Program-made: the position numbers and the translations under genes
The notes under the pieces: generated by a model
What the model saw: only the letters and a program-made list of their open reading frames with translations
Told to the model about the DNA's origin: nothing
Databases searched by the model: none
Shown: positions 33,266-63,629 of the stretch, piece by piece
Position numbering within the stretch: position 1 is the first letter of the stretch
Layout: each line of letters begins with the position of its first letter
Origin: Trichoplax adhaerens
Lineage: Eukaryota > Animalia > Placozoa
Assembly (NCBI RefSeq): GCF_000150275.1
Contig: NW_002060955.1
Coordinates: forward strand, 226,886-290,885
DNA: 64,000 nt
Reading direction: 5' to 3'

Positions 33266-36200
33266 TTATTTAGGTATTGATGAAGATTGACGATTGGCTG
33301 AAGGATTGATTACTGAACTATAGGTGGGAATCATTTCGTCTCCATTTTCAGCTCTGGCGATGTCATTTATTGTCGTATTAGATGCCACGCAAGTATCATA
33401 ACTAGGAGGTAAATTATTCTTGGCTTTTGCAAGTTTAAAAGAACAAAACATTTCGAGTAAGAGATGAATAGTCATTCAAAATTTGATTTTTATTTTCTAA
33501 TTAGAATATCTTACCTGGTACGTCATTAACCCTTGTGCTATCGAAAATGGATCGTAAATAAGAAATCGTATTTTCTACGTCTATCGAATTTTCTGATACC
33601 CATGATGAAGAACAACTCGAAGAACTAGTGCTAGCATCACTAGTTCTTCTACTGATGCAGCTATTGGACCAATTGTGGCAACTAGTAGGAGAAGATGATC
33701 TGAGTGACATTGTTCCTATAACTACCGGCATATTAACGCATAGGTTAAATCCAAATGGAACTTTAACAGAAATCTATCAAGTATAGAAAAAAGTTTGCCA
33801 AATTAATACGCAAGATCAATAGAAGCGGATTACTCGTTGTTATCAAAATGCTAAATGGCCCTAACATATTAGAGCAATTGAATAACTTATTGGCTTCAAT
33901 ATGTATGAATAATAAGCAGAAGGTATTAATTAAAGGATATTGAAAAATTGTTTGGATTAAATAAAAAATATCAATGCATTCTGCATTGCATCTCATGGAT
34001 CTAAAGATAGAAGTATTAAGCTATAATTCAAATGCCATATGAGATATTCAAGCTATCTACATGAATAGGTGTACTAAATACTTTTAATATATGATTTACT
34101 TTCCCAGTACCTTAATGTAATAAAGTAATTCAATGATTGAGCATTTGATAGTCGGTGAAAGGTTAGGAATGATAATTTCCCCATTCGTCCATGCCATTGT
34201 AGCACCTCCAGTAATTGGACGATTGTAATGAACTGCTGCAAGTTCTCGATCATGGTGTTCAAAAGTTCCTAGGGACAAAGTAGTTTCACCTCACTTTTGG
34301 TTAAGCGATAAATATATCAAACAAAAGTAAAAATTAATCATCTACTTGCTACTTATCAGGTATTAGCTCTTTCATTGTACATATTACTTAAAGTTTCAAG
34401 TAATATACAAAGATTAAGGTATAGCAACATGATGATAATTGATTAATCTTAATAAGAATTTAAGCAAGCCAAAAGCAGCGGTGAATTAAGTATCATAACA
34501 ATTTATATCTAGTTTCAAATTGGTTTGATAACAGGTAACTGCTAATTGTCATCAAACTGATAGAATAGCATGATGGAACCTACGATAAATTCAAGACACT
34601 AAGCAACTTATATAATAACTTAATATCTTAATGAAATACGAATCATCTATTGCTACGTACAAATTCAAGCTTACTAAATCTACTCGTTAACCAAATATTA
34701 AGCAATAAAAAAAAATTTTATATGTCGGAACCCTAATTCAGAAGCAATACCAGATACAATTTCAGTCATTTAAATTATTTGTATGACGGTCAATAAAGTA
34801 CGAGTTCAGTTACATATAAATTTAGAAGATATACCAGTATTTAATAGTAGCAAGCATCTACTCCTGAACACAAAATTAAGCTGGATAAATGCGTTTACTA
34901 TCCAAAGTATCCGACGATGCTAGAAATATTTGCAGCATATAATGATAAGAGGCATTGCTAAACTCAAAGTCAAGCTCTACAAATTAAACTGGCTGCCATC
35001 GATGTATGATCGAGGTATCACGACGATATCGATGCAGCAATATATCAATTTGATACAAACTGCAGAAGAGAATTAATATTTTAGTATTTTCTGTCAGCTA
35101 CTGTAAAAAAACATAACAGCTAAGGTAAGGTGCAGTACGAAATCAGAACTTATAATGACTGCATCGTTTAATATTGCATTGCGGCAATCATACTTTACTA
35201 ATATTATACGCTGTAAACTTCCAATTTACGTATGCGTTGTAGGTAGGTAAAATGCTACTAAAACCAAAATTAGAGAATTTAATGACTACAAAGCTTTCAA
35301 TTTATGCTCATATCTAGTCAAAATTATAGAAGTGGCTGATCATAGAAAATCTAGCAAGCTAACCTTCAGCCACATAACGGACATCTTGTAATAGTTTAGC
35401 TTTTACGTACGGGATTGTTCTACGAGTTAAATTTTCAATCTCCACATTAATAATAATCTTATCACCAGGACAGTATCCATAACGATTTAGCCAACTAGTA
35501 ACCTTTAATGGGCCTCTTTTCCAAATAAGCCAACCGACATTTTTTTGTCTCTTAACGGGAGCTTTAGCTCGCTACAAAAGTGCAACACCATTCAATATAT
35601 TGAGTAATTATTATGCAGATAATTAAGATTCTTAACAAGCACAGAAAGTAGAGATCTAAGTTATTTTGCTAGCAAATGGCTTCATGCTTTCACTGCCAAT
35701 TCTGCAGAAGTAAAATCAACTTACAAAGAGAAAGGGTAAGTTGATATTAATTCGTTCTTTAATAGTAATTTCTACTTTAGTTTCATATTTGCGCTCCTTT
35801 GGCCGCTCTGCTGTCGCTTCTAAGCGATATCGGATATAACAGTCGGAGCTATAGTCAAAAGAAGATGGCAAATTTTCAATCGGCAATTGAAATTGGAACC
35901 CAAATTTGTGCGCTCCAGCCGGAATCCAAGTATAATTGCCATCGCCATCTCGTTCTACATAAGAAATTTTTAGGCATATACTTAATTTACTGGATTTAAA
36001 CGAGTACTTTATCTCAATGCTTTATTACATAAATTTGAATATACTCTTTTCATATTTAAGCAATCAACAGTATCTCTGGAAAGAGTTTATCAAGTGAGAA
36101 ATAAAATCTCTTATAAAAACAAGAGCACCCATTTGATACTGAAATTTACAGTCATTTCCGAAGTGTATTATCGAGAATTTGTAAATCTTGAAGGCTGGGT

Positions 36201-37597
36201 TCTGATTATTTCAGTATGAAGTACAATATCTTATTGCTGTCATTAAAATCAATCATAGAGTACAGCAGCCAGCTCCTATGATAAACTAATCCATTTTTGT
36301 TACAATTTACTGTCTCCATGATTTTGATACCGAAAATACTTGTTAGTGAAACATGAAGGTATCTATTTCTCTATTTCTATAAAATTTTATTCTACTACAA
36401 ACTCTGGCTTCTGATATTTTCGATATGAAGTACAATATCTTATTGCTGTCTTTAAAATCAATTATTAAAGTATGGTAGCCAGTTACTATCACAAGCTAAT
36501 CAATTTATATTACAATATACTGTCTTAACAACTTTGGTTTCGAACCTATCGGTTGGTAAAATATTAGAATGTCTATTTCTATAACTCTTTATTCTACAGC
36601 AAACTCTGGCTGCTAATATTTTCTATGTGAAGTACGGTATCTTATTTTACTCACTTAAATTAATCCTAGAGTGCGGTAGCCAGCAACTATCATAAATCAA
36701 TCAATTTTTATTGCAATTTGCCATCTCTATAACTTTAATATCGAACATACTCGTATCTGTTAATAAAACATTGAGCTGTCAATTTCTATGACGATTTATT
36801 GTAAATTAAACTATATAACATTGAAAATCTTATGAGCGATTTTTCTTTCAAGACAATTAAGCTATTTTATAAGAAATAATACTTATACGAAACTAACGCA
36901 ACTTTATGTTTGTGATAAAGTATCTTTAAAACATTAAAAGAGGTAGTACTTCGCGTAAGACTTCATTTTATTTCATAAATTTGGCTCTGCCAACAAAATT
37001 CATAACTATCCATTTCCAGTCTAAAACTGTCCATTTTATTGCAACTAAATCTACTATTCACATATAGTATAGAGAGTACTTTTTACCTCTAACTCAAATT
37101 CTAACTTCTTGTTCAATTTATAAGCCATTATAGTAGATAGTACAAAGATATTATATTGATATGCATGATTTTTCTAGAACAGATTTTTTTTCTTGTTCAT
37201 ACATGAGCAGTTTAAATTAAAATGAACTAGATTCAATCCCATATGCTACCTTTTTAGGCTCTTACACAAATGGCCGTAATGCAAAACAGCATTTTTCATT
37301 GCTTTCTATCGTCTAGCATCAGTAAGGCTGTAAATTATTCTTACCTCCGCCGTAAATAGCATTGGTGCGATCGCAAAAAGTCAGAAACTCATAACAGTCG
37401 TTCACTTCACGTTCGATAACCGATCGATTCTTCGATTTTGTATGAGTATAAGCACAACCAAATAAGCGAATTTTAATAAATTTTAATTTAATTGCTTCAC
37501 GAAATTCAATTAACACTTGACCATGAATAGAATCTCCGGGATTATAGATCAATTTATTTTGATCCAATATGATTTGAAATAATATCAGTTTTCTCAT
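33266..37597 (-). CDS. Alpha-arrestin paralogue 6; exons 37597-37345, 35954-35725, 35571-35364, 34268-34111, 33773-33515, 33423-33266; ~421 aa; Ser-rich tail with PPSY
   Basis: Spliced 1266-nt open CDS. Motifs: IYNPGDSIHG, GAHKFGFQFQLP..LPSSF...YIRY, NRYGYCPGD, IPNLSPTI, MPVVIGT, LPPSYDTCV. The exon 6 acceptor (aaag|cc) is the least certain boundary. Confidence 0.9.
36195..36795. repeat. Diverged tandem repeat, ~3 copies of a ~202-209 bp unit, in intron 1 of arrestin 6
   Basis: Anchor tgaagtacRRtatcttatt at 36217, 36426 and 36628; tagccag and aaactctggc also recur. Confidence 0.85.
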
Positions 37598-39685: not shown

Positions 39686-42600
39686 TTATGCTTTAACACC
39701 CGTTACCATAGCTGGTTGTGCGGCTTGCACTGGTTGGCCCATATTGGCAGCATCATAGCCAGGAGGTTGTTGGGGAACTGTCGTTGTAGTTGTTTGCTGA
39801 ATAACGACGGTAGTTTGTGCCGGCTGGACAATAACTGTAGCAGTACCCTATTGGAGAGATAATTTACAAGTTTATTTTAAAATGATTACAACAATTTGAA
39901 ATACTTTCATCATAGATAATACATCTTTAATAATGTAGTTGGATTGCGATTGACTAAAAACAAATAATTAATTATAGATGACATATCATTAATGTTCCTA
40001 AAGGTGCAATCTAAAGCCACAAATTTATAAGAACTGCTTAATGTACGGCAATGATGTTAAATACACCTTTACCGTAACAGAGACACCACCTAAGGTACTT
40101 TCATAATTTATAGATATTTAAAAATAGTGCAATAAAACTAGTTATAGTTATAATAACGACTTATTTGACGATAGCGATAGAACGCTGCGGCAACAAGTAA
40201 ATCAAGATTAATCCTAGAAAAAATAAGATTGTTCCTCCAATGTTATCTTGGAAAATTAAATTATTCTAAAGTAATTTATTTCCCTATGCCCCATGCATAA
40301 CAGCTAATAAGATGACAATCCGTAATATTAATTACATTATTTTAAATTACCTTTATGATAGCTCTGCCAAGTGTCATAAAGCGTATGCATACTGCAAAAT
40401 TTGCGAGAAATATTAACATATAGATGACGGAAAAGATTATTGGGACAAAGTTGTACAAAGGGTTAAGTTGACCAATAGTTTGAAGATAAGTAACGCTGGT
40501 TGAAATGCTGTTGCATCCAAAGCAGAAGGCAATAAATTGTGTAATAAAGCCAACCAATCCAACAAATGTAACGCCTTTGACCTAGTTAGTAAGTAAGTAA
40601 ATTGTTGCATATTTTCTTTATATGTTCTTTCGAAAGAAATTGAATCAACAAAACTAATAAATAAATACTTTCAGTGGCTTAAGAAATATATAATTATAAC
40701 CTTTTTTTAACGATTTAATGATTTATTCAACAACGAATGGTAAAGGCTATAAATCCAGTACCGTAACTAGCAATGAGTAAATAGTTTAGAAATCTAAATT
40801 ATTAATAACAATTTAATTCAAAAAAATATTTTTGGGATGATTTTGGATCTAGACATTTCCTTCAATGTTTGAACTATATCCTGGAGCATAGACTTATTTC
40901 TTTTAAAAAATAGATAGTTTCAACAGCTAGTATTATCCGAACCAATAGTGTTATCAGGACAGTTTTGAGATAGAAACTACTATTAACAAATGTCGTTAAC
41001 AACATTAAGAAGACGTTCTGTATATTTTTCTCTTTCAGTAAAATCTTAATGGATTTAAGGCATAGATTAATTATTGTAATTATCATAGATTAACTATTGT
41101 ATTGTATTAATTATTGATTAATTATTATAGTCATGTAGATGATAATTTACTAGTGATTAAACTTTGATCAATAATTAATTGCAGTAGTGCTATTCCTAGA
41201 ATAGAATCTTTTAGAGAAAATTATGTTGGACCTAAAGAACAGGTAAACACTACCGGTATGGTATCCTGTATCTAATAGTATTGACTGCTATGAAGATAAT
41301 ATCTAGGTAATGCATTTATTAATTATTAATAATAAAATCTTCGTTAAGTATGATGGCAGAAATAATTTATCATTTCCTAGATCCGAAAACTATGCAGATT
41401 AACCAATATATACCAGTATTGAGAATTACTATGTCACTTTCAAGAAGTCGATTTTTATATATAAATTCCTGTCAATCAATGTTTGATCAATAATGCTGTG
41501 ATCTAAATGCTTCTTGCATCTTTTCTTTACAAACACCCTAACTAGAGCTAAAACTTAATTTGAAGACTGCCTAACACTATAATAATACAAACGGTCATCA
41601 TTGCAATTAAATTTATGATAATCACTGCTGTGCTATATATTAGAAGCCATTCTCATTTTAGAATTATATTTAGATAGATAGAATAACAAATTATTAATAT
41701 TTACCGAATTCGATGTTCTTTGGACCGCTGAACCCACAATAATGCCGACAATTCCTACTAAAATTGCCTAAACATCAAGCGATTTTAGAGTCAATATACA
41801 TCATTTTAAACGTTTAATCCCTAATATGTATTCAGATCAATGTCAAGACGTTAATTCGTTCAAAGTTTGGTTCTGTGCTGAAGAAGCATAGAAAAGAAAT
41901 TTTACAATGCACTGATTTTTTAGCAATTGCTATAAAAATTACGTAATTATAATTTATTCTGTTCGCTTTATCCTTAACTCAGTTTGGATAAAGGTTTACC
42001 AAGTAATACGTCAAAAAAAATCCACTTTTAAGCCATACTCCAGTTAACAAATTCGGCTTGATAAAATGTTAGAGCGTATAGAGAGAAGATATAGAACGTG
42101 CTCGTACTTGTAGATTAAGCTCTTTTAATGGTTGATCGATGGCAAAGAGATTTATGATTAGCCATTTTACCAGTACTTTCATTGAAATGGCATATCCAAT
42201 TCTCACGCGACATTAAGTAAAATTGCCTTAGATCTCGAATTTACTAATATACCCGTATAGAGTAGTTTAAAAGCATCAGAATCGAAGAGCGCTAATAATC
42301 AATACGTATCTATTCTCAATCATGATAACATTTAGCTACGGTTAAGGCCTTAAACTAAATTCTAATGGTTTTCAAAGAAAATTTTTTTGCTTTCTAATTT
42401 CTAGGTAGTGTTTATTTATAATTAACGCTCTTTGCGAAGCTTTTGTGAAAAATCATATATAGTAAACTAATTTACTGCGACTACTACTAGAACGCTGCAG
42501 ATATCAGTCATTGATTTAGAATAAGTGAGAAGACGGATAAGATAGGCTGACCTCTAGCTAATTCTAAAAGCTATAAATATGTTTGATATTAGCACCATTC

Positions 42601-43672
42601 TTTCACACATATTGTGGTAACTTTTAGCATCAATATGGCGTACAAACTACATGCTCTAGTATCGCTTTCTATCACCTTCGAAAGTCACTGTAATTTGTGT
42701 AATTGCAGTACGAGTTCTTTCCAACACACGTATTTGATCTAATCCTGCCGCTTTACGATTATCATAACGCCTGTTTTTATCAGGTAATGCCGCTTACATT
42801 TTGTTGCTATGGCTGAATTCAAGTATTACTAACATGTTCAATACAAAATCTTTTAAAATTAGTTTCAAATTAAGATTTGAAACATAAAGTGCACTTGTAG
42901 AACCAGCTATTTTCCCCAGTAAAAAATAATAATTAATGAACGTAATATCAATATTTGCGGTTTCTCGTTTAATAGATTCCATCCAGAAGAAAGAAGCACT
43001 GATTGATCATATTGAATTTTCATAACCATTAATTCAATGTCGAAGAAACTTCTATAAATTACAACTAACAACTCACTGCTTAATAGGGACAAATATAGAA
43101 AATGATTAGGCTACTTCAGATATAAAATTAAATTTTTCTCTGACTTTGATTACATTGAAAGATATTGTCGTGTATGGGCATAATCATCTTGCTATCTCCC
43201 TATTTTTCATTAACCAATCTTACAAGGAAAAAATCTTATAGAGAATTTACAATATAATTCATTGGACAAGCAAACAAACTGACAAACAAACAATTTATTC
43301 TATAAAAGGGCTAGATAGTTTGTTTTCTCTTGAACATCATTTCAAACAGTTCTATGAATCCATTCAGGAAATAGGTCAGATTTTATTTCAATCACTCACT
43401 AATTGTTCTATCGACAGAAATAGCAAAGGGGAACGAGCCCCGATTTATAAGAAACACCAAGATTTAGAATGGCAAATATTACTTACAAAAACGCCTCCCC
43501 ATACTGGATAATGATAAATTACAGTTTGTGTGCCAGCGTATACAACAGAAGCCAAGATTGGATTGGAACCAATACCGTAATGAAGAGCAATAGTAACGAT
43601 GCCCGATATGATTAATTCTATTCCCATATGAGTGAAAGCGATGGTGGAATAAGCTGCAACTACTGCACTCAT
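39686..43672 (-). CDS. MS4A/CD20-like four-transmembrane protein with C-terminal PPGY; exons 43672-43487, 41767-41705, 40581-40351, 39847-39686; ~213 aa
   Basis: All introns are phase-0 GT-AG and give a 642-nt open CDS. Four hydrophobic segments; TM2 reads HYPVWGGVF|AILVGIVGII, matching the YPxWGG..F...G signature of the CD20/MS4A family. The Q/T/P-rich tail contains QQPPGYD. Confidence 0.8.
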
Positions 43673-45129
43673 TTTGTCTTTAATCTCGATGTAGATTTTA
43701 AAAAGAAAATAAAAGGAGAGAATCTAGTCACTAATTCAACAAGTTGAAAGTAATGGAGAGTAATAGCGAGGATTTATCAATCAATGGAATAAAATTCTTT
43801 TTTCTCTATCCTAAATAATTTACAGTAACGTAGTAAGATATAGTTATGATGTTGCTACTGTCGCTTATATCCGTCTTTTAGTGTTGCTATGTACTTTATA
43901 ACATTAGTTATTTCTATGGCGGTTTTACTCAGCATTGATTGTCTATGAAATACATTTAACAACATCATGCCCTGCAGGGAAAGTTATTTTTAGCATAGAG
44001 AAGGACCATCAGAAAACCTCCATATCACTATCAGAATTACAGTCGAATTGATTATAAAGGTCGGTGTTATTAACGATAATAACAGTCTTAATTCAGATGG
44101 TCCATAAAGATAAATCAATTTCTTTATCTTCATTATCAATATACATACTCGATAAGACACAGTAACATCTTTCTTCTTATTATTCAATAACTGCTAGTGC
44201 CCTTTCTTTGTGTAAGAACATAATTTAATTACTATCGAACTAGAATTAACAATAACAATTAATAATTATAATGAGACACAATTACCTTGTCATTAAACTA
44301 CCTGTTAACATATACTGTACTAGTTCCTATGATAGTATTCCTATCCAATCCCTATATGAAAGTATCTGACGTAATCGAATTACTTGGATAATCCTCTATG
44401 AATAGCTTTGCATTTCTTCAATCAAAACATGATAAAGGCTGATTTTATTACGTATCAGTTGCTATAGGAACCCTAGGAGAAAGCTATAATTTGGCGTGTC
44501 ATGACCGATTTGCATATACTTCCTACAGTGAAACTATAGGATAGGATAAAAATTCATGAGTTCAAGGTTTTAATCTTAGTAAGATAAATCACGCATTAAT
44601 CACGGCATAATTTAGTGGTTAAAAGTAGATCAAGAAGAATTGATTGAATACACTTGCCCTAACATCCGCTATTATAAACTTTAATTCTAATTTCAACATT
44701 CTTGCAATAATAACATCTTCTGAAAGATGTCTTAAATATTTTGATTAAACATAAGGCTTTTCCTTGTTCAACTAGATAGACTGAGTACGTATAAACTAGT
44801 ATTAAGTACTTAGAATTTCAACAATATTCCATTATTTTCAAGCACAATAATATTGTTGGAAGCTTTTAGCTAATGATGATACTTTTCGACTTTTCCTACC
44901 GTATTAATTTATCGTATGCTAATATTCAATTAAATTACTGTGAAATTTCGAGATTCTTCCTACATTATCAAGCACAAGAATTATCAGAGTTTATTGATGA
45001 TTTTACTTATCTTACTCAATCCTTTCACGATGAACGAACAAACCAAATATATTATATTAATAGGTTTATTTAGAATTCAAATACTTTAAGAATATCATTA
45101 TGAATAAGAATTAAGCCAAAATAGTTTTA

Positions 45130-46215
45130 AAAACATTACTTTTATTTATTCCATCCAATCCTTTAAGGATAATATGATGGAATGAATAGACCAAACAAAT
45201 GCCATTAATAAGTTTAAAGCAATTTCAATATCTTTTCAATCTTTTACTAATTCTACTCAATCCTGCATAATGAATAAACGAAATACTATATGTGTGCTAT
45301 TATGACGTTTTACCAGGATTTCAATATCGTTTCAAATCTTTTCACTATCATCGGGTTTAAAAATACTTCAGAATATTGTTATTAAAGATAAAATTGTCAA
45401 TGGAAGCATATGCAAAGCAGATACATTTTGTTTATCTTAAGCTATATGATACGGATCTCATTACAATATATCATTACTTCTTCACCAAATAATATTCAAA
45501 TCTCTAAAGCAACCTAGAGTAGATTCTATGCCACTTACTATTTTAAGTGAGTCTAAAATAATAATATTTGCTCTGGAAATCCTCTCATTGATCATAATTT
45601 ATAATATTACGATCCATAAATTACGACGTTATAATTACTTCACAATTACTATTCTTGCAAATAAATTCGATCATTAAATCCTTATAACTACTCTATCAAT
45701 GAAATATCAAGCTAATTTACCTTCAAAATCTACGTGGATATTAAAATGTATTTAATTGTATAGTTTTAAAAGCTTCAAATCTATCAATAACTCTAACTCA
45801 CCAGATTAAATTGCTACCTGTAGCAAAATCAAACTGAATGAATATCAATACTCTATATTGCTACTTTATGTAATATCCATTCATGAAATTGAACATACGG
45901 ACTCAGTACAATCACATAGCATCAAGTGTAGACAAAATTTAGCGTAAAGCAAAAACTATTTACCCCCATTGGATCTAAAGCTACATATGTAATTGTAGAT
46001 ATATTCGTAAACTTATAGCCTTACGGCGGAAGACAGTAGTTACTGACATATGTAAAAGCGTATCCTATCTAAAATAGTGTTTGCAAAGTGCAACACCATA
46101 AATACCGTATGTGATGACCATAGCTTTAGGAATTTGCATTCTGATGATTGTAATAATTTGGGTCATCACATCAGCAAAGAATTACGCAAGATTATAGAGG
46201 AAATAACCATCTTTA
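45130..46215 (-). pseudogene. Probable decayed rhodopsin-class (family A) GPCR
   Basis: In order on the minus strand: YFLYNLA*FFADV (TM2-like), GVALCK...HMSVTT...AISLRIYL (TM3/ERY-like), VYT*CYVIVLSPY (TM4, stop at the expected Trp), IYCNE (ECL2 Cys), HMLPLTILSL (TM5). Multiple stops and frameshifts; alignment by eye only. Confidence 0.5.
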
Positions 46216-46675
46216 TTGCAATTAATATTAATGAAAAATCAAGAGTAAGGTTTCAGCATGAAAACAGTATAATATATTCTGATAGCTATAGTAAGATAGG
46301 ATAGATTGATCATGCAAGTTCACGTGCATTTAAGTGAATGAACTACATAGATAATTGTAACACCACTTTATAATACGTTTAGGATTATTCACATACTAGA
46401 ATGTATAATACCACCGCTACCAATGACAATTTTAGATGCCGTTTAAGAAAAATATGAAAATCACACTGCACGATTACTAGATCTATTTGCCAATTTCACC
46501 TTTTAATTACTCTCAGTTAGGCTTTACTACTTTCGTCTTGGTGCTATTACAGTAAAGTCCTAGATCCAAAATAATCTAAATTGTACGTTTTGATTATGGG
46601 CTACGTTCAAAGTAATATTCGTTTCTTACTTTGCATTTTGTAAACCACTGTTACAGCTATTGAAGTCTATCTACA

Positions 46676-46768
46676 TTACTTAAGATCCATAGATACAGCG
46701 TAATTTCGTCCAGTATTTTGTTGGATAATGACTGCAGCGTTAGCTGGAGCCACCACAGTGTCACAGGT
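46676..46768 (-). other. Orphan exon-like segment resembling the last exon of the MS4A-like gene
   Basis: Acceptor tttataaacag| is followed by TCDTVVAPANAAVIIQQNTGRNYAVSMDLK*, compared with GTATVIVQPAQTTVVIQQTT at 39847. Upstream exons were not found. Confidence 0.4.
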
Positions 46769-49700
46769 CTGTTTATAAAAGAAATAAAAACTCATATTAT
46801 TCCATGCTAAATACAAATCTTTTCCTATTAGCTGTAAAGGATGTCAAAATAATTACTATTTGTGGAAGTCATTAGTGAATTTCGAAGGATTGTAATAGGT
46901 CCTAAAAATTTATGCTTGACGAATGATAAAAAATGAATATAACACTTTGTCCATCGATCAATACAGGCACACAGTGTATCAGTTTAGTGTTAACGTATTT
47001 TAAAATCTAATAGGTCCGAAATAGGTTTTGATAAGTAGCGCAAGTTTAATGCTAATACTGCAAGCTCTCAAGAGCGACGGTTCGTTCCATTCTTGACTAC
47101 AGTTTTAAAAATGATTAATTATTCTGGTTTATATTTTCTTTCCAATTCGTATTGTAAAGATAAAATCGTTAGTTAGCAAGTGCAGCCAAAAACTCTTACC
47201 GCAATCTAGTTTTTTATAGCAACATTTCTCGATGCCTAAAATAATTTAATTCGTTGATGTCGTAATTTAATACCCTAATTACTATTCTAATTTAAGCCAA
47301 CTGTTAATTTACTCCTTGCGGCTAAGATCAGAATTAATTCCATATGTGGTAAGTTAATTTAGGTTTATCAATGATGGTATTATAAATTTAAGTAAAGCCA
47401 AAATCATAGCTAAAATTATAAGATTATACAAGAATAGTTTAACTTAAATATTAGATTACAAGATTACGTTAGTATCTACCAGTAGAAGACAATTATAATA
47501 TGTATTGTAGTAATTCTACTAAGATGTTCATATTAAGATTCCGAGGCATAAGTAGATTAACTAAATACGTAATGTAAAATTTGTATTGCGATACTTTAAT
47601 TTAAAAAGCAAGTTATGAACAGATCGCATGATAGTAAATATGCAATTAATCTTGTAGCTTGCTTGGCAAGATAGGATAGTACTGTTAAAAAGAATCAACA
47701 CGTTACTAGCTCTTTATAAATGATGAATTTGGCTGTAATAATTTAGTTAGTCTGATAGCAGCTAGTTATCCTTGGTATTTGTATGATAAACCTAACTTAT
47801 GTAATAATATGAAGTTTAAAAGAAATTATGGTTCTTGTTTTATTATTTTGAAACACTTTATCACAAACTTTAATGCTGATTTTATCTACTGTATTTCTTA
47901 CGGCTATAACGTATTGTTTCAGTTGTCGATAGTTGCAGCTTCAATCTTAGTTTCCAACATTGCTTGGATATACGATAAGCGTATATTAAAATAATTTTAT
48001 AGTTTATAATCATGGTCGTTCATTTTAACTATCATCCAATATTGTCAAAATATCTTATATTTTATAGCATAAGATTTAGTGTTAAAATATAGAATATTAC
48101 AGAATAAAATAAAATAAATTGAAATTATCCATTTTTATATCATTAATATTCTAATCACTTATTTCTCGCAATTATATATTGCCCTATTTAAGCTGATCAC
48201 TTCTAGAACCACTACCAGCAACATACTACTACTTAAGTCGAATTTATGAATAAGATAAAGTTTATCATGAATTTAAGTAACATTTAGAACACGGCTTCTG
48301 ATACAATTTTGGTCAGGTTTGTGTCTATTTTCTTTCGTTAAGTATCACTTCCTTGGCACTTTATTTATCTACCTCATCTACATACGAGTTTAGTAAAGAT
48401 CCATATTCCTTGCTCGTATTATAATTATCAATTAAAACTTTGCCTTCAGATAGGTATAGAATATGCTCCTGTAGCAGAGTATAGTTTTAAAAATTTGCTA
48501 CAATTGATTTTTTCGAAATACTTTAGCCTTAAATACGACAATCTAGCCAACTTACGAAAGCTATGATCCTTACCATGGTCTTTACGAAATAATTCATGCT
48601 AACATGGATCTCTGTATCCAGTAGGAATTCATCTTTTTCAGAAATAAAGATTTGGCTATGATTGTTATTCTAATCATAAGCCTGAATAATATTTTTGCAT
48701 CTGGATATGTACTTAGTAGGGTGGGATAGTATATATACATTTACTGCCTAAGATTAATATTTATATTAGTGGTAACTCAGTGTGTTACTTACAGTGCTGT
48801 ACTATATGAAATAAAGAATCAAATGATCATTCATATTCCCTTTGTTATCCTAATCTTAACTTGCTTACCGGTAACTCCATCAATTAATATTGGCTAGAAG
48901 GGCCTTTAACTGCTACTACAAATGATATGTTACAAATTTTTTATGAATATAAGCCATATTCATACCGAATTATGTCCTCATTTCATCTCCAATTTATACA
49001 ACGGAAGTTCCTTTCAATCTTTATGTTTTACCCTTTTCTAAAAACAGCCACTATCTAAGATCTATATAGGAGTTTTTACTCGTCTGAAATTCATTCTACC
49101 TGAAGCACTTTATCGTAAGTCAACGTATAATAAAGTTATTTATTCTACGTTGAAGATATAGCAGTCTATGTTTTACAGAAAGACTTATGATTTCATAATA
49201 TATAACGATATAGTATAGACACGAATTCTTCGAAATTCTATGAAGTTATAAAAGTTCAGCCACAGAATATGTAATTTTGCCTAGTAGTATGAACTAGAAC
49301 TAAAAGCATCAATCAATCAATCTGCAAGGACAATTACTGTTCTTCCGCAATATTAAGCAAATAATTTTTAATTCTAATTTTAAAGACAGCTAATAGAAAT
49401 CCACTTTCTTATCTAAACAAGCACTTTTATAAAATAATTAAACTATTCAATCTATTACAAAAGTTTAATTTTAATTCATGACGTATCATTATACCGGATG
49501 AAGTAACATTAAACACAGAATAAAATCAAACAAGATTGATATGGTATTCTTTTCTATATGAAGTATATTCTATTATTAATATAAATCAATTTCTACTACA
49601 CTGTAGCCTAATTTCACATACCTATTATCTATATTTAATAATTTACTTTGTAGAATTGTATTTACATTCTAGTTTGAGTATAATGTAAAAATACTCCAAC

Positions 49701-50349
49701 ATAGACATAAGTTTTTTTAATCACTCTTTCAATTTTATAACTAATTCTCTCTTGATGCGCTTTCTATATAGTAAAATAAATTATTATCATAGATCTTGAT
49801 AATTAATTCTACTAGCTGCGCGGTAAGCTTATACACATTACCTCTTCTACTTTACTATAGCTACTTAACCAGTTCATGTTGTTTATAAACGTAGTTATCG
49901 AACACAACTTCTTCAAACTTTAACTGCAATAAAATGTCATTATTTTGTTGTATAAGTCCGATGTAGTTTTTCGTTATGGTAACGGACTCTCAATTTTCCG
50001 AAATACTAAAACTGAATGACCATTTTCTTCCAATTTAAATCTTATTCATTTTAATGTAATTATAAGTACCATTAATTAAGATTAATCTCTTTCACCTTGG
50101 TACCGATAATTAATGTCGATAGATTTAACTAAATTAGCTACTAGTAATCATGAACATATTAAGATATATTCACATTTCCGAACATTTAAGTATAACCCTT
50201 AGTGTCTATTTCTCGGTTAATCACGTATTTGCCGGAGCAGAATATTAGCCTAGTATTATGTACCTATTGAATATTTTAAAAAAGATATTTCTATATTAAG
50301 CCTAAAGTGTTATCTCTTAGGTGATAAAGAATATTTTAAACAAAAATCA

Positions 50350-50880
50350 AGGAAAAGCTATTAATTGCTTTCGCAGAAATTTTAATCCACAATATTTAAA
50401 CATGCCTTGCATTCAACTAATATGGATTACAATACCTGATATGAACAGCTACTGGGAGCATCGATGTAGATAAGTTATAAGCAGCAAATAATGTATAGAA
50501 TGTTAGTTTTTCAATATCTTAAGAGATGAAAGCTTCCATTGTAACCGAAATCATAGATATCTGTTTTCTTCGACTAGAAATACCTTTCGTTAATTAGGAC
50601 GTCTCATCATTGCATAAAACAGGTATAGTGAATTTCAGAACTCTCCACTTCATATGCCGGCTGATACGCTGAACTCAAGATCAATCCAAATATCTTTTAT
50701 CTATGGAGTGGAAATTAGACTTGTTTATAATAACTTAGTAAATACAAAGGTTAACTTAGTAAATACAAAGGTGAACTTGTAGAAACCACTTTGGCTATTG
50801 TTATTATTGTCAGGAGCAAAGCGATAAATAAAGTATTAGAAACGATGAATATACATAGTAATAAATATCTGTTCTATCTC
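50350..50880 (-). pseudogene. Possible GPCR remnant (TM5-TM7/helix 8 region)
   Basis: In order: TLFIALLLTIITIAKVV, RRKQISMISVTMEAFIS*, HIRYCNPY, IVD*NFCES; broken by stops. Weak because AT-rich DNA readily yields hydrophobic translations. Confidence 0.25.
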
Positions 50881-52214
50881 CTAAACTGTATTAGAAAATA
50901 GAGTAATTATTAGACTTAATGGTCAGCTGATGATATTTTTTTGTATTTATCGCTGCTTAGTATCAATCTAACTTCAAATATTAGCAACTACAGTAATTAT
51001 TGTTGTTTTTGAGATATGGAAAATAAAGAAATCACCAACGGCTTTAGATTCAATTAAAAAGAAAAATTGTTAATCTATTGTAACACTACAATATAATTTT
51101 AATTACAATCTTAGGTATATTGATAAAATACGTATCTGTTATCTTCGGCTCGATTCGCGAGCAGTAGAGTAAAATAATTCATCTATATTAGCATTTAGGA
51201 AAAACATTTACTTTCATACTCTATTGTTTAATAATTAAAAATCAAGAAAGATGTAAGTAACATCTCCGAATTCTTGAATCATTCCAATAATTATTTAGTG
51301 GTAACTTACTCTAATCTAGCGCTAATTTATTTATTGCTATAACTATGAAATGTTCCATATCTTTCAGATATTTACGCTACTATCCATCTGAAATATGGCA
51401 AAGATATTAGTTCATTTTTTTATGATTCAAACTTTAAGAAATACATTTCAATTTTATTTGTAATCATGAATATCTTTCTTTAGCAAGACACACAAGTGCA
51501 AGTTTAATTAGTCTACTTATCTAATATGTAGGAAAGCTTGCTAAATTTTACATCAAATTTATTAATGACATCATATTTTATTCATAATTATAACTATAAA
51601 TATTAGTTTCTTCAGTTAGACGGCATTAAATAGGGTAAAATAATTATAATTTATCTATTCCATATACGGAAAGGAAATTTCAAATTTTTTATCATAGTAT
51701 AAAATTTATCGACCTGATACACAGAAACGGTATTTTACATTTCATGATTCAACCATTTTCTTCTTAAGATGTAATATTTACAAAAAAACATCAAAAAAAT
51801 AATATAACTTATGCAACTTTAATTTTATTTATAATTATATATTACCAACGTAGCTACAACTACCGGCACTAAGTATAGCATTGTTGAGCAACTTTTTCGT
51901 TGAGAACTATCGGTAACTACATTTTCTAGAATCAATCTCCACTGGACATTTAAGTTACAAAGTTTAACTATAATTCATGAGCTATATAGCTAGAAATATT
52001 CGCTCTTTAACTAGATCTAAATTTAGTGTCGTAAAAATGTAAAAATAATTTATCTGACTGCTGTAGTGCATGAGAAAGATGCATATTTGCATTGTGCAAT
52101 ATTTAATGATGAAAAAGAGAACATTATAATATGCAACTTTTGTAGGATTCGTTCGCTGTTTATAATTACTTTATGCTATCTTATATTCGATTGCAATTAA
52201 CTGCGTTGATTCTT

Positions 52215-53490
52215 AGATTTATAGCCTTATTGGTAGCTTTGACACTTTTAAACTACCAACTGTGATGGATTCTAGCTCATTTTTAAATCATCTCTACATA
52301 TGACTTTCTAATTTATTTTCGCCGACGAATATTTTCTATATTCGGTAGGGACAGCATTCATTATAATAGGTAGAGTTATACATTCAGTCCTAGGGGAAAG
52401 ATTTTTCATCATTTAATTATTTACAATTATAATATTTATTAAATAAAATAAAAAGTTCGAAATGTATTTTTCTTGTTACACTCACTAAAGTATTTAAATA
52501 CTGCTTCCGATTCAATGGTATACACGAATGAGTCTTCTATCCAATTGGATAGAAACCTCTTCATTGTGAAAAGAAACAGCTTGCATAACTTTACATTTTG
52601 TTATACTATACTTAAAGCACTAATATAGCCTGTTAAAGCCCTAAATTCGTAAATTCTTGCTCTTAATTCGTACATTAACAGGCTATTATAATTATGCATA
52701 ACAGCAGGGATCGAGATTTACCGAAATCGTATAAAGTAAGAAAGCTAGCTTTCGCGTATCCACAAATCAACATATGCAAAACTCTAATATATGATTTAAA
52801 AATAGCTTAGCAGACGCACATGATTAACAGAAGGTTAATGTATTCAATTTGAAGCTTTCTTGTAAATATGACGCCTAACTGATGGACGTACCGCTGAACG
52901 AAAATAGGAAGTTTATACTTTGGATGTTTACTCTGGTAATGATCCTTTTACCTAACTTAGGTTGTATTATTGCACGTTACAGCCTAAATTCCCTGACTTA
53001 TCCAATCTTCCAGAAATTTTAATCTTATTTATCATTATTTAGCGGTAACTTATTTATCGTCAAGAACTTGGAAATGGATTAACAACTCTCATAGCGCTCA
53101 CTATAGTCAAAATTTTCGTCCATCTTTGACCGATACTAGGCTTTATTCCTATTTTCTGAATAGGTATTTTCCAGTATTGAATCTGTTAACTGTAACTCCA
53201 TTTAAGAAACCAAATAATATTGATGTAGATAAGCTGGAAATAATTGTACGCAAATGGCTTATTCTACGTGACAACATAGTTATAACAAAGACATCTTGCC
53301 CCCTGTTTGTTAACAAACACAATCAATAATGAATTCTGTGACGCCAACTGGTATTGATGCAATGTGTTATTTCTATATTTTTTTCTTACTCCACCTATTG
53401 TTGACAGCATGGAGATAACAAGATTGAAAATGAAATAATAAAATAGCCAATCAACATGATGTGGTTATTGTTCGGCCTGTAATGATCACT
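52215..53490 (+). pseudogene. Possible decayed rhodopsin-class GPCR
   Basis: Frameshifted pieces in the expected order: FIALLVALTLLN, FAD, LCITAGIEIYR (ERY-like), FILWMFTLVMILLPNLGCIIARYSL (TM5-like), IVRKWLIL...LPLFV (TM6-like), PPIV.S/DNKIENEII (TM7/helix 8-like). Confidence 0.35.
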
Positions 53491-54720
53491 TAATCAAGAT
53501 TGAAAATTGTATAAGGTATTCCATTTTTCATATTATCTCAATACGTAGGTTGATCAATTAGGTTATTATCTTACCTTCAAATAACCAGCCTTCATAAATG
53601 ATTACAACAATAGAATAATAGATAAGATTCAATTAACGGTCCAACATCTTTTATTGACTTGATACAGTTAATATTTAACATTTGTATTTTATCTTCTCTA
53701 CTTTCAAATTTTTCCTTTTCAATTTTCTTTTCCATCCGACACTCAATACAGTACTATTATCCTAAATATCATTCCATCATTATCTAGCATCCAATCAATC
53801 ATATACCTAAGGTATCTTATAAATCTTTGTCGAGAATTTTTTTCTAAACTAGCAACTTACCTTATCATGCTCTACTATAATTTTTTTTTTCAATCGTGCA
53901 TTACACGGGAAATGATGGATTTACTACTGCCATAGTTGTATGAAAAAAAGAAATATCTTCTACGTTGTCTTAGACACGTTACTATTAACCTATTCGTCGC
54001 ATAGATTTCTGTCTTCAGTTCATTTTAACTGTCATATCCTGCTCTAATTTGACATCAATTCAATTATAATAGAAACTGCCTGTGATGATCAAATGAGATA
54101 TAAGAATTAATATTACAAGGTAGGTCGCTAAATCCTTGTACAATCCATGCTATAGATTTTTGAAATATACTTTTAGATGAAAACTGGGGTCTACTTCAAA
54201 TGGCTGAATATTTCCTGGTATTCAGTTAAAATGATACATTCTAAACGATAACTAAATAATTTTTACTTGATAATTGAAATTGAATATTCGTTAACAGCAT
54301 TATCTTGAATGTCATTCCTAACAGTCTTATTTTCATCCTTTTTCAATTTCTAACTGCCTCAGAAAATAATAATCTAACTTATTTTAATCAAGATCTACTG
54401 ACAGCATGAACCAAGCTATAATCAAGCTTACTGATTGAATCTAAATATCATTGAAAATAGGATATGATTAAGAATAAATAGTCAATAGAGTGATTTGTGG
54501 TGGAAAAAAACCAAGATATTAAAGGTAGGATAAATTCATGCATTATCAAGCTGTTAATAATGAAATAATGGATTGAAACAATTTTCCTTTTAATCTTCTG
54601 CTTGTCCACAATCAATACGATCTTTGAAGAAACTAATCTATTTGTTACTGTAGAAGCATTCCTTATCCTTTCTTTTCTTCTTTTAGGGCATATACTATCT
54701 GTACATCAGATATTATCATT

Positions 54721-54894
54721 ATGGTTAAAGCTTTGACTTTGAAAGTTCAATTTTACGATAACCGCGATATTTATTATCCCGGGCAAATTTTAGCCGGTTA
54801 TCTCGATACTGATATCAGAAGAGATGTCCAAATCAATTATATTTCAGTTCGGTTATTAGGCCAGGCTAATAGCTCACCGCCAATGGGAATGGTA

Positions 54895-54925
<31 letters not shown>

Positions 54926-57900
54926 GCGACAGAGATGATTATCAACGACGTACAAGCACGGTTAAATTGGATGAAAATCAATATCAAGCGTCCATCATCG
55001 ATCGAATAATTGTGCCTTGGGGTAAAGGTAAGAGAAGTTTATCATTCTTGCAGGATTGACCTTGATGAATACTATCATCAATTGAGGCTCAAATTCAATG
55101 TAACAGAATACTCTCCTTTCAAGCATTTAAGAAATTAAAATTTCTTTCTTCCAATTTGATTATGGTTGATTTTGATCCTAACAAATTGCTACTAATGCTA
55201 AAAGTAGCATCGATCAATTTTATCCGTTTCCTCTAAAAAGACAGGAAAATTAAATAGCCTTTACAATAAATCCTAAATCTACCCATTACTCTCTCTCTCT
55301 CTCTCTTCCTCCCTCCATCATGATAGGAATTAACAAAGATCAATTTCATATTTATGATTAGTATTGTACCTATTTAGGTGATATTCCCATGTTACTGCCC
55401 ATTTTACACCTAGAACTCGTAGGCGTTTACTAGTAATAATAATTTTATTAATTATTATTTCGTACTTTGGCTATTTTTTGCCATTTTTGAAATACTATCG
55501 ACTTAGTACGCATTACAGCAACCAATTAATACTTATTCTCATATTAGAGTCTAGACATTTCCAACGATGACTATCCATTTTTGAAGCCACCTTTGCACGA
55601 ATAGTTTGCATGAGGAGTGCTCTTGTATTGCCGTTGGAGCAGTTATTATATCATCCAAATTGAATTGTCCATTCATTTTCAAGCCTTTATAAATATTCTT
55701 ACACCATTCTACCGATATTCTACAGACAAGTTAAACAGGAACTTTATGGCTTGATGAATTGCAATTGTTGCAAATTGACTAATATAATTTGTAACATTCA
55801 AATGTGCCTTCGTACATTTCAACTGAAACTACAGTCAATATTGCACGTGATAGAAGGGATTTGATTAACTTTATTGCCGGAAAATATATTCATCATTTGA
55901 ATAAAATCTGTTCCGATTTTTTCTGATCTGCTTATATTGCCATCTTCATTCTGTAACTCTATTAAAATTGGTTTGGTGGTTGGTAATCATAATATTTGAT
56001 CTTTAAATACCAAAATCGGCTCGTCATCATTGCATGCAGATACAATAAACATTCTTCGAGTTAACTTACATCCAATACAGCTACTCTTACCTAATGTGTC
56101 AAAGGTATTTAACATCTTTATTTCTTACCTATACTATCAGTATATTCAATTAGTATACATTTCTCTCCACATGATCAGAGCATTCTATTCAAGATTGTGA
56201 ATACTTACTTTTATTACGGAATAATTGACTAGTGGCATGCTAGACTAGATTATGCTCTTCAATCAGAGCATGATATTCAAGATTGCAAGTTCTTTTCCAA
56301 AGCAATATATGGATAATACTGTCCTTGTTTAGTCATCTAGCTTATTTATTTAAAACCTCTATTAACATATTATAAAGTAAGATGCTTCACAGCATTCAAA
56401 ATCTTCCAATTCTAAACAAATGGAGCTAAATTCTAGCTCTAGTTTATGTTATCATTAATTTTAGGATGCTATATCTCTAACCTTGCAGTGATGTGTCATG
56501 GTTTTTCATTCTGCAAACTACTTTTTATGATGACAATTAACTTTACTTTTTATCACAAAAATTTCTACCATATTTTCAATTTCTACTATTGCTTTAACTA
56601 ATAATGGCGGAATATTCTACACCAATCCATTCTAACCTCTATTATCATAATTTAAGATCATAATACATTTATTCCCTGATTATTGTGGCATGATTTTTAA
56701 TATTGTATATGCATGTTAAGATTGCATGACAATTAAACTTTATTCTCTTACCCAGTAAATTTGACTTCTTCATTTTAAATCTCTACTACTGTATTAAAAG
56801 GCCATCAAAGATGTTAGGTATTCTAACATCTTCTAGACGTAGCCTTTCCTATCCTAATGTAAAAAGCTATATCTGTATTAATTATTACAGCAGAAATTTC
56901 CAAGATTGCAAATCCTTCCTAATTATACCATTACTTTCCTCCCATTTCTTAGAACTCTATCCCTATTTTGAACCTCCATTGTAGGACTAAAGGAGGTAGA
57001 ATAATCAATATTCTGATTTTCTATCTCAGTCTTCATAAAGTCAGGCTGTGAAGCCTCTGGCATTTTATTATCATGCTTCAACTTTTGCAATATACGAGCA
57101 TGTATGTAGCCATTACAAAAGCCCATTTTTCCTTTTTCTCCAAGACTGATCTTATGATTTTGAATCTCTTTTCTCAATCCTTTGCATGTGTATGCATATT
57201 TCAAATCCGTCTCTACTCTTTTAAGGCTCAAAATGGCAAAGTTTATTCGTTACTGTCAAGACTGCAGTCCTTGTATCGCTGACTATATTCGTAATTCATT
57301 TTTTCGAACTAGCTCTTCAAAGACCAAAAATGGCAAAGTACATTTATTACTTTTAGGACTGCGATACTTGTATCGCTGACTATATTCTACATAGTTCATT
57401 TTTTACTTTGAATTTCCTGCCTCAGTATTTTGCATCTTTACTTCGAATAGCTTTACTAATATAAGGCTAAAGATCGTGGGCTATTTAAAATTTTTAGTTA
57501 TCAAGTCTACAAAGCTTGTACTTGAATATGAAAACATTTGGCCATTTTTAGGACTTTATATTCTACTTTATACGACAATCGGTTTTAAATTTACAATCCT
57601 TTTTTTCATTTTAATTTTGGGACTTCATTACCGTTATCTATAATAATGATTCGAAAGGTCGAGGAGTTGTTCTCAATTAATTGTCTAGGCTTTGATTAGA
57701 GGTCAAAATAACATGCATATATTATTAATCTGCAACCTTTCAGTTCCTTTCCAAGTTTCATACCTTTGTTTTAAATTCTAACCTTAATTTGTGATACAGT
57801 TGAAGGCTAAAATTAAAAAATAGAATCTCATTCTCTCATTTCACATATTCATCCATTCTAATGAAAAAGGAAATGTCTTGCTATATCAATCTACATCTGC

Positions 57901-60900: not shown

Positions 60901-63629
60901 AAAGCCTGGTTATATGTACTAAACTACTTAGAGCCTGAAATGGAGCCAGCAACATTGTTTACAAAATGGAGGCTTAAATCTGAGTTATTTCAAACAGTCA
61001 CAGCAACAAGAATAGATTTAGAAAAAACAATGATTTCCCAACACCTTTAGCCTTGGCTAAATTCTAATTATTTAAATTTTATTTGATTTAAATTGATTAT
61101 TGCTATCTGTTCTTCCCAAATCAATCATAATGATGTTTAACGTAGTTGTGGTCTTCCATCTAGTATAAATCTAGTATAAATAAAACATCGATATCCTCAA
61201 AGGCAATAAAATTCCGACTAAAATCTTAAAGACCGACTGCGATCTTGCATCAATTTCTGGCGAAATATTCTAAAATGAGTTTTAAATGACAATTTCTATT
61301 TATGCTATCCAATGCCATTTAAATTAGCCACCTATGACTCATATTCAATAAATAATTTTTCTTTCCGCTTCTCAATAACGGAAAATAACCTTGAATTTGT
61401 TAACCATTTTATTATTGAACTACACCTATAATTATAATTAAAAGTAAGATCGCCATTTTTGCCAAAGATTCAATATATTATCAATATAGAAGAGAAATGG
61501 AAATGAATTCGAGATTAATGTTTTCCAAACACTGTTATTCCAGTACAATTAAAACGGAGCTAGTAGAAAGCATATCAAACGTTGGGAAATGTTGAGTAAT
61601 AATAAGTTTATTATATCATGTCCTATTTATTTTCATTTACGGCTAAAGTTGCTCATTCCTCATCATTTTAAGGCATTAAAAATGTCGAACCAAAGCATTT
61701 CTACTCATTTTTATGCTATACGATTATGATTTAGGGTCTTTTAGAATGAATGCAGTAACAGCTTTCGTATCCCATCTAATTCTTTAGCCCTTTTTTGGTC
61801 TTAAAGCTGCACTAAAATGAAAATTTTAATACCTATAGGTAACTTTGCAGACGATCAAAAGCCAATTCGACACGACATTTTAACTGCTGGACACCATAGA
61901 TTTCCTTTTGCATTTGTCTTACCCGAAGAAGGTTTACCATCCTCAGTCAAGGCTGGCTCCACATTTACCATCAATTATCAAATTTCAGCTACGATTGTTT
62001 TTCCTCATCGCCCTTCTTATACTGTGCATCAATCTTTTTTCATCTTTGAAGTAGTTGATGTTAATTTGCCACGTTATGTTGTAAGTCCTAATTTCATCCT
62101 GTTGTTGATTCTTATATCATTAAATATACTAACATTGATTGCTTGATACAATATAGAAATCATCTAAAACCGATACGAAAGAGATTAAAATATCCAAATT
62201 ATGCTGCCTGCATGGATCCATTCGAATAACGGCCTCAACAAATCATGTAGGATTTCGTCCAGGAGAACCAGTTTGCATGAATGTTAGAGTCCAAAATAAC
62301 AGCCACAAAATCATTCGTTATTTACGTGCTAAATTAATTCAAATCGTGGAAATTAAAGGTAGGTTAGAAAGGCAATAGTTTAATCTAATCAAATTACTTT
62401 AATTACAACTTAAAGAGAGCCGAAAAATAGGATAATGCTATTAATCCGAATTCATTCTATATCTGTCACTACATTTACTACCGTAATTTAATATGGTACA
62501 TCCGACGGTTAGCGAAATTAAAGCAATTTAACCGCACTATCGAGCATATTTGCTCGGAAAAACATTCTATCAAATCAATCGTTCAAGATGAAGAACTTAT
62601 ATGGGAAAAGGAACCTTTACAAATACCTTCAGTGCCTCCAACGGTGAATTCATGTCCTGCAATTAGCATTAATTACGCTGTTGAAGTAAGTAGCACAAAT
62701 AGGATATACTATTTACCGTAATTTCATTAGAATCACGCCTTTTTTCTCGCCTTTTTTCTCGACACTGTCTTCTATTCCATGTTAATAACTAGCATATTAG
62801 CTATCGCTGATTTTACATTTACTTGTAAATAATTTTTGGCTCAAGCCGGAAGCTAGCATACGGTAGTAGCGTAGTTGATGATGATCCAAAATGGCCAAAG
62901 TAGATCATTCGTTCAGAATAATTTCTAAATACTACCTTATAGCTATACTGTCCTTTCAAAATGCGCCAAGAGTATCCAAGATTAATCGTAATCGCTATTA
63001 GTCGAATTGTTTGCTAATAAAGCAATTATATGATAACTAGTGTATAATTAAACAGATTATAACACCCATTTACTACACTTAAGTATAAATTTTATTCTAG
63101 CTCAAAACTATAATGCATCGTTTTTTTTCAAATAGAAGCTATATTTAAAATCATAATAGAGGCAAAGTATATCATTCTCTCGGGAATAAATTATAAGGGA
63201 TATCGATTAAAGGAATGAATTTTGTGCCTTTTATTGTAGATACAGGCAGTCTTGCCACGTAAATATCATCTAGTCGTTCGAATTCCGATCACTATTGGCA
63301 CAGTTCGGTTATTTATAAATACTTCTGCATCGGTTACTGCCTATCGCTCCGGAGTAGACACAAATTGTCGTCTAGGTAAGTTATAAACTAAACCAGATTC
63401 ATTTTTATTAGCAGGAGTTATAAACAGATCAAATTAATATGCCAAATTACTTACTCAATATATTATGTAAAGTACTATCAATCATTAAATAACTGCTATT
63501 GCTCTTCTTAAACACTTGATAGATGGTTCTGAATCCGTTAAACAACAACTTAAGGGTACTATTAGTGATGCCGTTGCATTTAAAGACGTTGAGCTCGATT
63601 TTAATGAACGTCGTCAAGCTTCTCTTTAA
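54721..63629 (+). CDS. Alpha-arrestin paralogue 7; exons 54721-55027, 61839-62080, 62157-62358, 62513-62685, 63240-63375, 63523-63629; ~388 aa; poly-Asp loop, tail RRQASL
   Basis: Spliced 1167-nt open CDS. Motifs: IYYPGQILAG, GHHRFPFAFVLPEEGLPSS, LCCLHG, GFRPGE, IPSVPPT, IPITIGTV. Joining across the 6.8-kb intron 1 is supported by the conserved phase-1 WGK|G junction and the absence of another exon 2. Confidence 0.88.
54895..54924 (+). repeat. (GAT)10 coding microsatellite encoding poly-Asp
   Basis: Ten consecutive GAT codons in exon 1 of arrestin 7. Confidence 0.95.
55289..55306. repeat. (CT)n microsatellite in intron 1 of arrestin 7
   Basis: Run of ctctctct... Confidence 0.85.
57228..57390. 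repeat. ~97-bp imperfect tandem duplication in intron 1 of arrestin 7
   Basis: aaatggcaaagt at 57231 and 57328; tgtatcgctgactatattc at 57272 and 57369. Confidence 0.85.

Follow-up and report, generated by a model that had tools for sequence, protein, structure and literature searches.

LAPTM4/5 and Ndfip1/2 are small multi-pass membrane proteins that serve as PY-motif partners of Nedd4 ligases and carry several conserved PY motifs; Ndfip possesses three membrane spans. In published work, Ndfip is described as a PY-motif partner of Nedd4 ligases, and ENTREP/FAM189A2 binds ITCH via PPxY (PMC8811627), so that the background cited by the first-pass annotation of the DNA studied here is accurate on this point. 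For the MS4A proteins, a published analysis found that the resemblances in invertebrates are confined to short transmembrane stretches (PMC2826416). Furthermore, the alpha-arrestin repertoire of placozoans is unusually large: in Trichoplax sp. H2, 23 alpha-arrestins have been reported, 17 of them in one cluster, and the arrestin cluster that surrounds our locus has thereby already been published (PMC6321704).

Here, we analysed a window of 64,000 nucleotides of Trichoplax adhaerens (contig NW_002060955.1), which corresponds to C1402:226886-290885 in the genome that was searched (105.6 Mb, 1414 contigs, ~30% GC). Within this window, a gene predicted to encode a four-pass membrane protein with a PPGY motif in its tail is situated among alpha-arrestin genes. 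With a probability of roughly 55%, we consider that this is a real, single-copy and lineage-restricted gene for a four-pass protein with a conserved membrane domain, which acquired its PPGY and is a bystander in the arrestin cluster.

Gene model and homologues

The tetraspan gene was predicted from the sequence as a four-exon gene on the minus strand (43672-39686), the exons of which encode 62, 21, 77 and 53 residues, adding up to a protein of 213 aa. Exon 1 (43487-43672, minus strand) opens with a short N-terminus and continues with TM1, which contains a conserved glutamate, and with outer loop 1; near its end, TM2 starts with YPVWGG (43493-43510, minus strand; read directly from the sequence), after which two further residues follow. 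Intron 1 (41768-43486, minus strand; 1719 nt, gtaagt..tttag, phase 0, GC 0.31) separates it from exon 2 (41705-41767, minus strand), whose 21 residues contain the remainder of TM2 and the beginning of the inner loop. After intron 2 (40582-41704, minus strand; 1123 nt, gtaaat..actag, phase 0), exon 3 (40351-40581, minus strand) contributes 77 residues that begin with VKG and comprise TM3 and TM4 with outer loop 2 between them, as well as a basic juxtamembrane segment. Intron 3 (39848-40350, minus strand; 503 nt, gtaatt..aatag, phase 0) then leads to exon 4 (39686-39847, minus strand), which encodes 53 residues and the stop codon. This last exon forms a T/Q/P-rich tail that is predicted to be cytosolic and contains PPGY (39755-39766, minus strand), a candidate WW-domain ligand by motif reading.

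All three introns are of the GT..AG type and in phase 0, with gtaagt, gtaaat and gtaatt as donors. The exons have a GC content of 36-49% and the introns one of 26-31%; between 37.6 and 54.7 kb of the window, no stretch is richer in GC than exon 4 (GC 0.49). The assignment of this tail exon is based on its open frame, its GC content, the splice site and a weak similarity to the tail exons of the homologues described below. A 17-nt micro-exon at 40073-40089 was considered and rejected, since with it the reading frame is not maintained into exon 4. The first-pass annotation had proposed a four-exon gene of about 213 aa with YPVWGG and a tail PPGY, of which exons 2 and 4 were invisible in the open reading frame track. 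These proposals agree with our analysis: splice sites, phases and summed exon lengths are consistent, the two motifs are present at 43510-43493 and 39766-39755, and exons 2 and 4 are missing, in their own frame, from the list of open reading frames with an ATG, GTG or TTG start.

To date, relatives of this gene have come from biofilm metagenomes. With exon 3 as the query, HMMER found one true relative (P0002, a 62 aa open reading frame) and one repeat-protein artefact (P0001) among 1.84 billion representative proteins. P0002 is located on L006, a 2.4 kb scaffold from a marine-biofilm metagenome (PMC6355793). A word search with exon 1 led to P0003, which is carried on the metagenome contigs L010, L011 and L012, and L010 contains a full-length homologue whose exon plan is that of the gene in the window. 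Exon 1 of L010 ends 2 residues past FPVWGG at a gtaaat donor and shares 55-60% identity with its counterpart in the window gene, whereby both the position and the phase of intron 1 are identical in the two genes. It is followed by a 21 aa exon 2 in phase 0, by a 77 aa exon 3 with the same boundaries and 48% identity over all 77 aa, and by a 31 aa tail exon with a ttatag acceptor. Likewise, L006 shows a 21 aa phase-0 exon, a 77 aa exon (43% identity over all 77 aa) and an 18 aa tail exon, and the start of exon 4 of the window gene aligns weakly with the tail exons of both L010 and L006. L006 represents a paralogue, and both contigs stem from one metagenome.

The only DNA match of L010 in the Trichoplax genome is the window locus, namely the TM1 part of exon 1 with 78% identity over 79 nt. 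This points to an orthologue-like relation between L010 and the window gene, which may be orthologues or co-orthologues. In its own genome, the tetraspan gene is single copy, as the exon and profile searches returned the window locus only. The exon 3 profile and the exon 1 word searches gave the biofilm-metagenome homologues alone; neither a protein-pattern scan nor a search with a degenerate DNA pattern detected a homologue in the JGI metagenomes, and exons 1 and 3 matched only unnamed clusters with uninformative scores in the ESM Atlas. The gene thus appears to be lineage-restricted, and it is best described, as far as these searches reach, as a tetraspan of placozoan type that is an orphan by sequence and has a PY tail specific to its lineage.

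The identical exon plan in two metagenome homologues, which both derive from one organism, speaks for a real, conserved coding gene at the tetraspan locus and against a series of open reading frames joined by chance. A non-functional locus, whether such a chance series or a decaying pseudogene, would fit the observation that the protein libraries, which possibly do not include the records of this genome itself, gave no self-match. However, the four exons are intact and GC-rich, their splice sites are canonical with matching phases, and the exon plan and residues are kept in the two homologues, which makes a non-functional locus barely credible.

Conserved membrane domain and possible relation to CD20-like genes

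An exon-by-exon hydropathy analysis gives four hydrophobic spans in the predicted protein, with YPVWGG preceding the second span, in line with the four-TM topology that had been assigned earlier. All five lysine and arginine residues outside the spans (5/5) are located in the TM2-TM3 loop or immediately behind TM4, and none is present in the two presumed outer loops. From this distribution, we predict that both termini face inwards (N-in/C-in), which places the tail in the cytosol. Comparison with the homologues revealed that conservation is concentrated in the membrane spans and that loops and tails are divergent. The conserved positions in the spans include polar residues: TM1 has E, TM2 opens with PVWGG and has GS..Q, TM3 has Q and finishes with CNS, and TM4 has N and C. 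The conserved glutamate of TM1, PVWGG of TM2, Q and CNS of TM3, and N and C of TM4 suggest a function inside the membrane. There, the protein would most likely assemble with itself or with a partner, as is the case for small tetraspan subunits.

The first-pass annotation had assigned the protein to the CD20/MS4A family. In a fuller version of this idea, the gene would be a divergent true member of that family and an ENTREP-like membrane adaptor of Nedd4/ITCH, which works with the neighbouring alpha-arrestins by supplying PY in trans or as their cargo. The likeness to the CD20-like family (PF04103, which comprises MS4A, TMEM176 and the FAM189/ENTREP domain) is one of general design, since both are small four-pass proteins with short outer loops and with both ends inside, as predicted for the window protein, and in both P-x-W-G-G starts TM2. 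The CD20 chain reads YPLWGG at this place, according to the alignment of a joint profile with the PDB, compared with YPVWGG in the window gene and FPVWGG in L010. Differences are also evident, as the exons of the window gene match neither the HMM nor the profiles of the family, the N-terminus is very short and TM1 carries a glutamate. By eye, TM1 of the window protein has G, I, G and IAL positions in common with a CD20 segment, which the search tools left unscored.

Searches at the level of sequence did not connect the gene with CD20. When each exon of the window gene and the exons of L010 and L006 were searched singly against Pfam, no family, including CD20, was matched at E ≤ 10. In contrast, exon 1 of each of three other genes in the same genome does match Pfam CD20 with E 2e-4 to 2e-3, and therefore the exon-wise negative result has a positive control. 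The genome-wide PF04103 scan yielded three loci, of which C1409 carries a tandem pair and C1408 the third, and did not pick up the window locus. The joint profile of three placozoan CD20-like exons (A1) found CD20 chains as its only PDB matches, which were weak (E 4-9), and did not find the window gene in its own genome. Searching the PDB with the tetraspan exons and exon profiles gave chance matches to photosystem II subunit K alone, and no CD20 chain was returned at E ≤ 10 by phmmer with exons 1 and 3 or by the exon profiles A5 and A6. Finally, hhalign aligned nothing but the 8-9 residue PxWxG motif between the window and CD20-like exon 1 profiles, pairing YPVWGG with PIWxG of the placozoan CD20-like exons at a probability of 3-5%. 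The LAPTM, Ndfip, MARVEL, claudin and tetraspanin families were also considered and rejected, as no exon has a match to them in Pfam, and to our knowledge the hallmark motifs of these five families are absent from the tetraspan.

The exon plan speaks, genuinely though less strongly, for a remote relationship. In all three CD20-like genes of this genome (3/3), exon 1 ends exactly 2 residues past WxG, in phase 0 and with a gtaagt donor, as it does in the window gene, and intron 1 thus has the same position and phase in each of them. One CD20-like gene was modelled further: its exon 2 encodes 19 aa in phase 0, and its exon 3 starts from V-N-S immediately ahead of TM3 and contains TM3, the loop and TM4. 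The plan shared by the window gene and the CD20-like genes therefore extends to a phase-0 exon 2 of 19-21 aa and to an exon 3 that begins with V-K/N-G/S and contains TM3, loop and TM4, a full comparison that rests on this one gene. An automated search for exons 2 and 3 in the two further CD20-like genes gave no clean models. The agreement in exon plan is suggestive but not decisive, and because it coincides with the PxWxG motif, a very distant common origin with the CD20-like genes is possible.

In view of the exon-wise CD20 negatives and the published warning that invertebrate similarity to MS4A is limited to short TM stretches (PMC2826416), the gene is not filed as a member of the CD20 family. 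The membership claimed earlier is not supported, given that motif, exon plan and topology are all that the two have in common after exon-wise Pfam, PDB and profile searches. The CD20-type adaptor outlined above is favoured by the motif, the exon plan and the four spans with a predicted cytosolic PPGY tail, and disfavoured by these search results. Further support for such an adaptor comes from ENTREP as a precedent (PMC8811627), from the position within the arrestin cluster, and from another CD20-like gene of the same genome, located on C1408, which lies upstream of, and on the same strand as, an open frame of 210 aa in which two PPxY motifs stand next to each other. The combination of CD20-like gene and PPxY open frame on C1408 has an ENTREP-like layout. 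On the other side, PPGY is not conserved and the contigs of the homologues, with their 1-2 kb of flank, show no arrestin exon. Overall, we consider a CD20-type adaptor working with the arrestins improbable.

The PPGY tail and the alpha-arrestin cluster

Within the tail that follows TM4, PPGY is situated 30 residues in and represents a canonical group I (L/PPxY) motif in a predicted cytosolic segment. Its conservation in relatives, on which the first-pass annotation had partly staked its proposal, was not observed: APGY is aligned with it in L010, and the tail of L006 carries no such motif because it stops before the site. The tails differ in length as well, with 53 aa in the window gene, 31 aa in L010 and 18 aa in L006, whereas the TM exons are 43-60% identical. 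The tail is short and fast-evolving, and its one canonical PPGY has probably been acquired in the Trichoplax genome.

The genome contains at least three loci in which WW repeats immediately precede HECT exons of the same strand (C1411:5476394-5479059, C1412:3181793-3178520 and C1413:5706394-5708835). Since Nedd4-type WW-HECT genes are present, docking of a Nedd4-type ligase at the candidate PPGY is possible, even though the motif is no conserved feature of the family. That PPGY is a functional PY motif is a tentative proposition, with roughly one chance in three on the sequences at hand.

Because PPGY is absent from both homologues, it could be a chance motif. According to this alternative, the tetraspan would be unrelated to ubiquitin ligases, for example an auxiliary subunit or membrane organiser, and PPGY would have arisen by chance in a P/Q/T-rich, fast-evolving tail. 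The contrast between the conserved TM exons and the tails, which differ in both length and motif, agrees with this, as does the conservation of polar residues within the spans. Moreover, PPxY occurs in 1.1% of shuffles that keep the composition of the tail, and a rate of about 1% for one tail is not negligible proteome-wide. However, PGY is common to the window gene and L010 at the aligned site, indicating that the site is not wholly random. A tetraspan with no connection to ubiquitin ligases is somewhat unlikely, though to be taken seriously, and we continue to prefer a membrane protein whose acquired PPGY could serve as a docking site.

The genomic surroundings are dominated by alpha-arrestins. 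Matches to Arrestin_N extend over C1402:17.6-289 kb, which is about 270 kb with about 25 genes and one gap of 85 kb without matches. The tetraspan gene lies near one end of this cluster, between an arrestin at 262-264 kb and the last two at 281 and 288 kb (C1402), so the earlier claim that it is embedded in the arrestin array is borne out by the Arrestin_N matches on both of its sides. Downstream of the tetraspan gene and on the same strand, the neighbouring alpha-arrestin gene is placed at 33398-37597 (minus strand), with an Arrestin_N match on the open reading frame at 37319-37597. On the other side, 11 kb without an evident exon separate the tetraspan gene from an open reading frame at 54721-55059 (plus strand), read as the first exon of the next arrestin-like gene.

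Two further details of the first-pass annotation concern the arrestins. The exon at 54721-55059, on which the next arrestin on the far side had been placed, has by itself no Pfam match, and an Arrestin_N match is located at 61817-62146. The PPSY motifs that had been attributed to some of the arrestins are present in open frames at 105-116 and 33398-33409 of the window, which establishes them at the level of open reading frames and not of arrestin gene models.

The earlier proposal had gone further, suggesting that the tetraspan could supply PY in trans to the PY-less arrestins or be cargo of the arrestins. In its most far-reaching form, the protein would be a membrane partner dedicated to the alpha-arrestins next to it, as their cargo or as an anchor that provides PY to those lacking it. 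When the open frames of the window were compared by tblastn with the homologue contigs, no arrestin exon was found in flanks of only 1-2 kb, which are too short to assess linkage. A dedicated partnership is in our opinion very improbable. The simpler reading is that a tetraspan gene within a 270 kb tandem arrestin array is a bystander, and the preferred explanation of the locus would account for its position in this way.

If the partnership were nevertheless true, both components of a Nedd4 adaptor system of placozoan origin would be encoded at the locus. More generally, if adaptors of the arrestin and tetraspan classes cooperate, a tetraspan located in the cluster is the natural first candidate. 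The practical value of the present work is modest and consists of a curated gene model. In addition, the shared exon plan provides a clean example of how a very old CD20-like kinship may be hinted at where sequence searches fail.

Comparison with known PY-bearing membrane proteins

The ITCH activator ENTREP/FAM189A2 and the window protein have in common that both are membrane proteins with a cytosolic PPxY, which for the window protein is a predicted location and a candidate ligand. They differ in scale and conservation: ENTREP has a cytoplasmic region of 343 aa with two conserved PPxY motifs (PMC8811627), whereas the window protein has one non-conserved PPGY in a tail of 53 aa. Furthermore, ENTREP contains a CD20-like domain, while none was detected exon-wise in the window gene. 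With respect to LAPTM4/5 and Ndfip1/2, the exons of the window gene have no match to the corresponding Pfam families, but the design is the same, combining few TM helices with a short cytosolic segment that bears PY. If a Nedd4-type WW-HECT ligase docks at PPGY, the tetraspan could thus be a client of that ligase or a minor adaptor, similar to LAPTM, Ndfip and ENTREP.

The alpha-arrestin cluster around the tetraspan gene

The alpha-arrestin cluster occupies ~270 kb of contig C1402 in the Trichoplax assembly (G000:C1402:17600-289000) and comprises ~25 genes bearing Arrestin_N, with an 85 kb gap at 83-168 kb in which no Arrestin_N matches were found. Smaller groups of Arrestin_N-bearing genes are located on C1410, C1409 and C1383. 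In the window, the four-exon, PPGY-tailed tetraspan gene is separated from the next arrestin-like gene by 11 kb (43700-54700). This interval contains neither an open reading frame of note nor any GC-rich exon-like segment, except for one 120-nt window at a threshold of 0.40, and its sole tandem repeat is short (50731-50778).

Within intron 3 of the tetraspan gene, a 17-nt segment on the minus strand (40073-40089) is flanked by AG and GTAAAG. This segment was left out of the gene model; splicing it in would shift the frame.

CD20-like genes outside the cluster

On C1409 (G000:C1409:5086000-5095999), a tandem pair of CD20-like genes lies on the plus strand at positions 4391-4564 and 8691-8873 of this segment, with a spacing of 4.3 kb. 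The first gene continues with a phase-0 exon 2 of 19 aa (4741-4797) and an exon 3 of 89 aa (5007-5273), both on the plus strand.

In the 2.4 kb marine-biofilm metagenome scaffold carrying one of the two tetraspan homologues (L006), the GC content of the 3′ end (2100-2409) is markedly above that of the remainder; this end may represent repetitive sequence or another kind of element.

An ENTREP/FAM189-like layout on C1408

A further CD20-like gene was located on the minus strand of C1408 (G000:C1408:3610000-3619999), where exon 1 (8842-8985 of this segment) matches Pfam CD20 with an E-value of 3e-4. One of its introns contains several near-identical short open frames in tandem (~4780-5830, minus strand), exemplified by a DHLLIDWLITLAIL-type segment, which probably constitute a repeated element. 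Downstream of exon 1, the same strand carries an exon of TM3-TM4 type as well as an open frame of 210 aa (3938-4567). The latter has no Pfam match and carries two adjacent PPxY motifs, PPVY and PPAY, separated by a single N. This combination of CD20-like exon 1, TM3-TM4-like exon and double-PPxY frame resembles the layout of ENTREP/FAM189.
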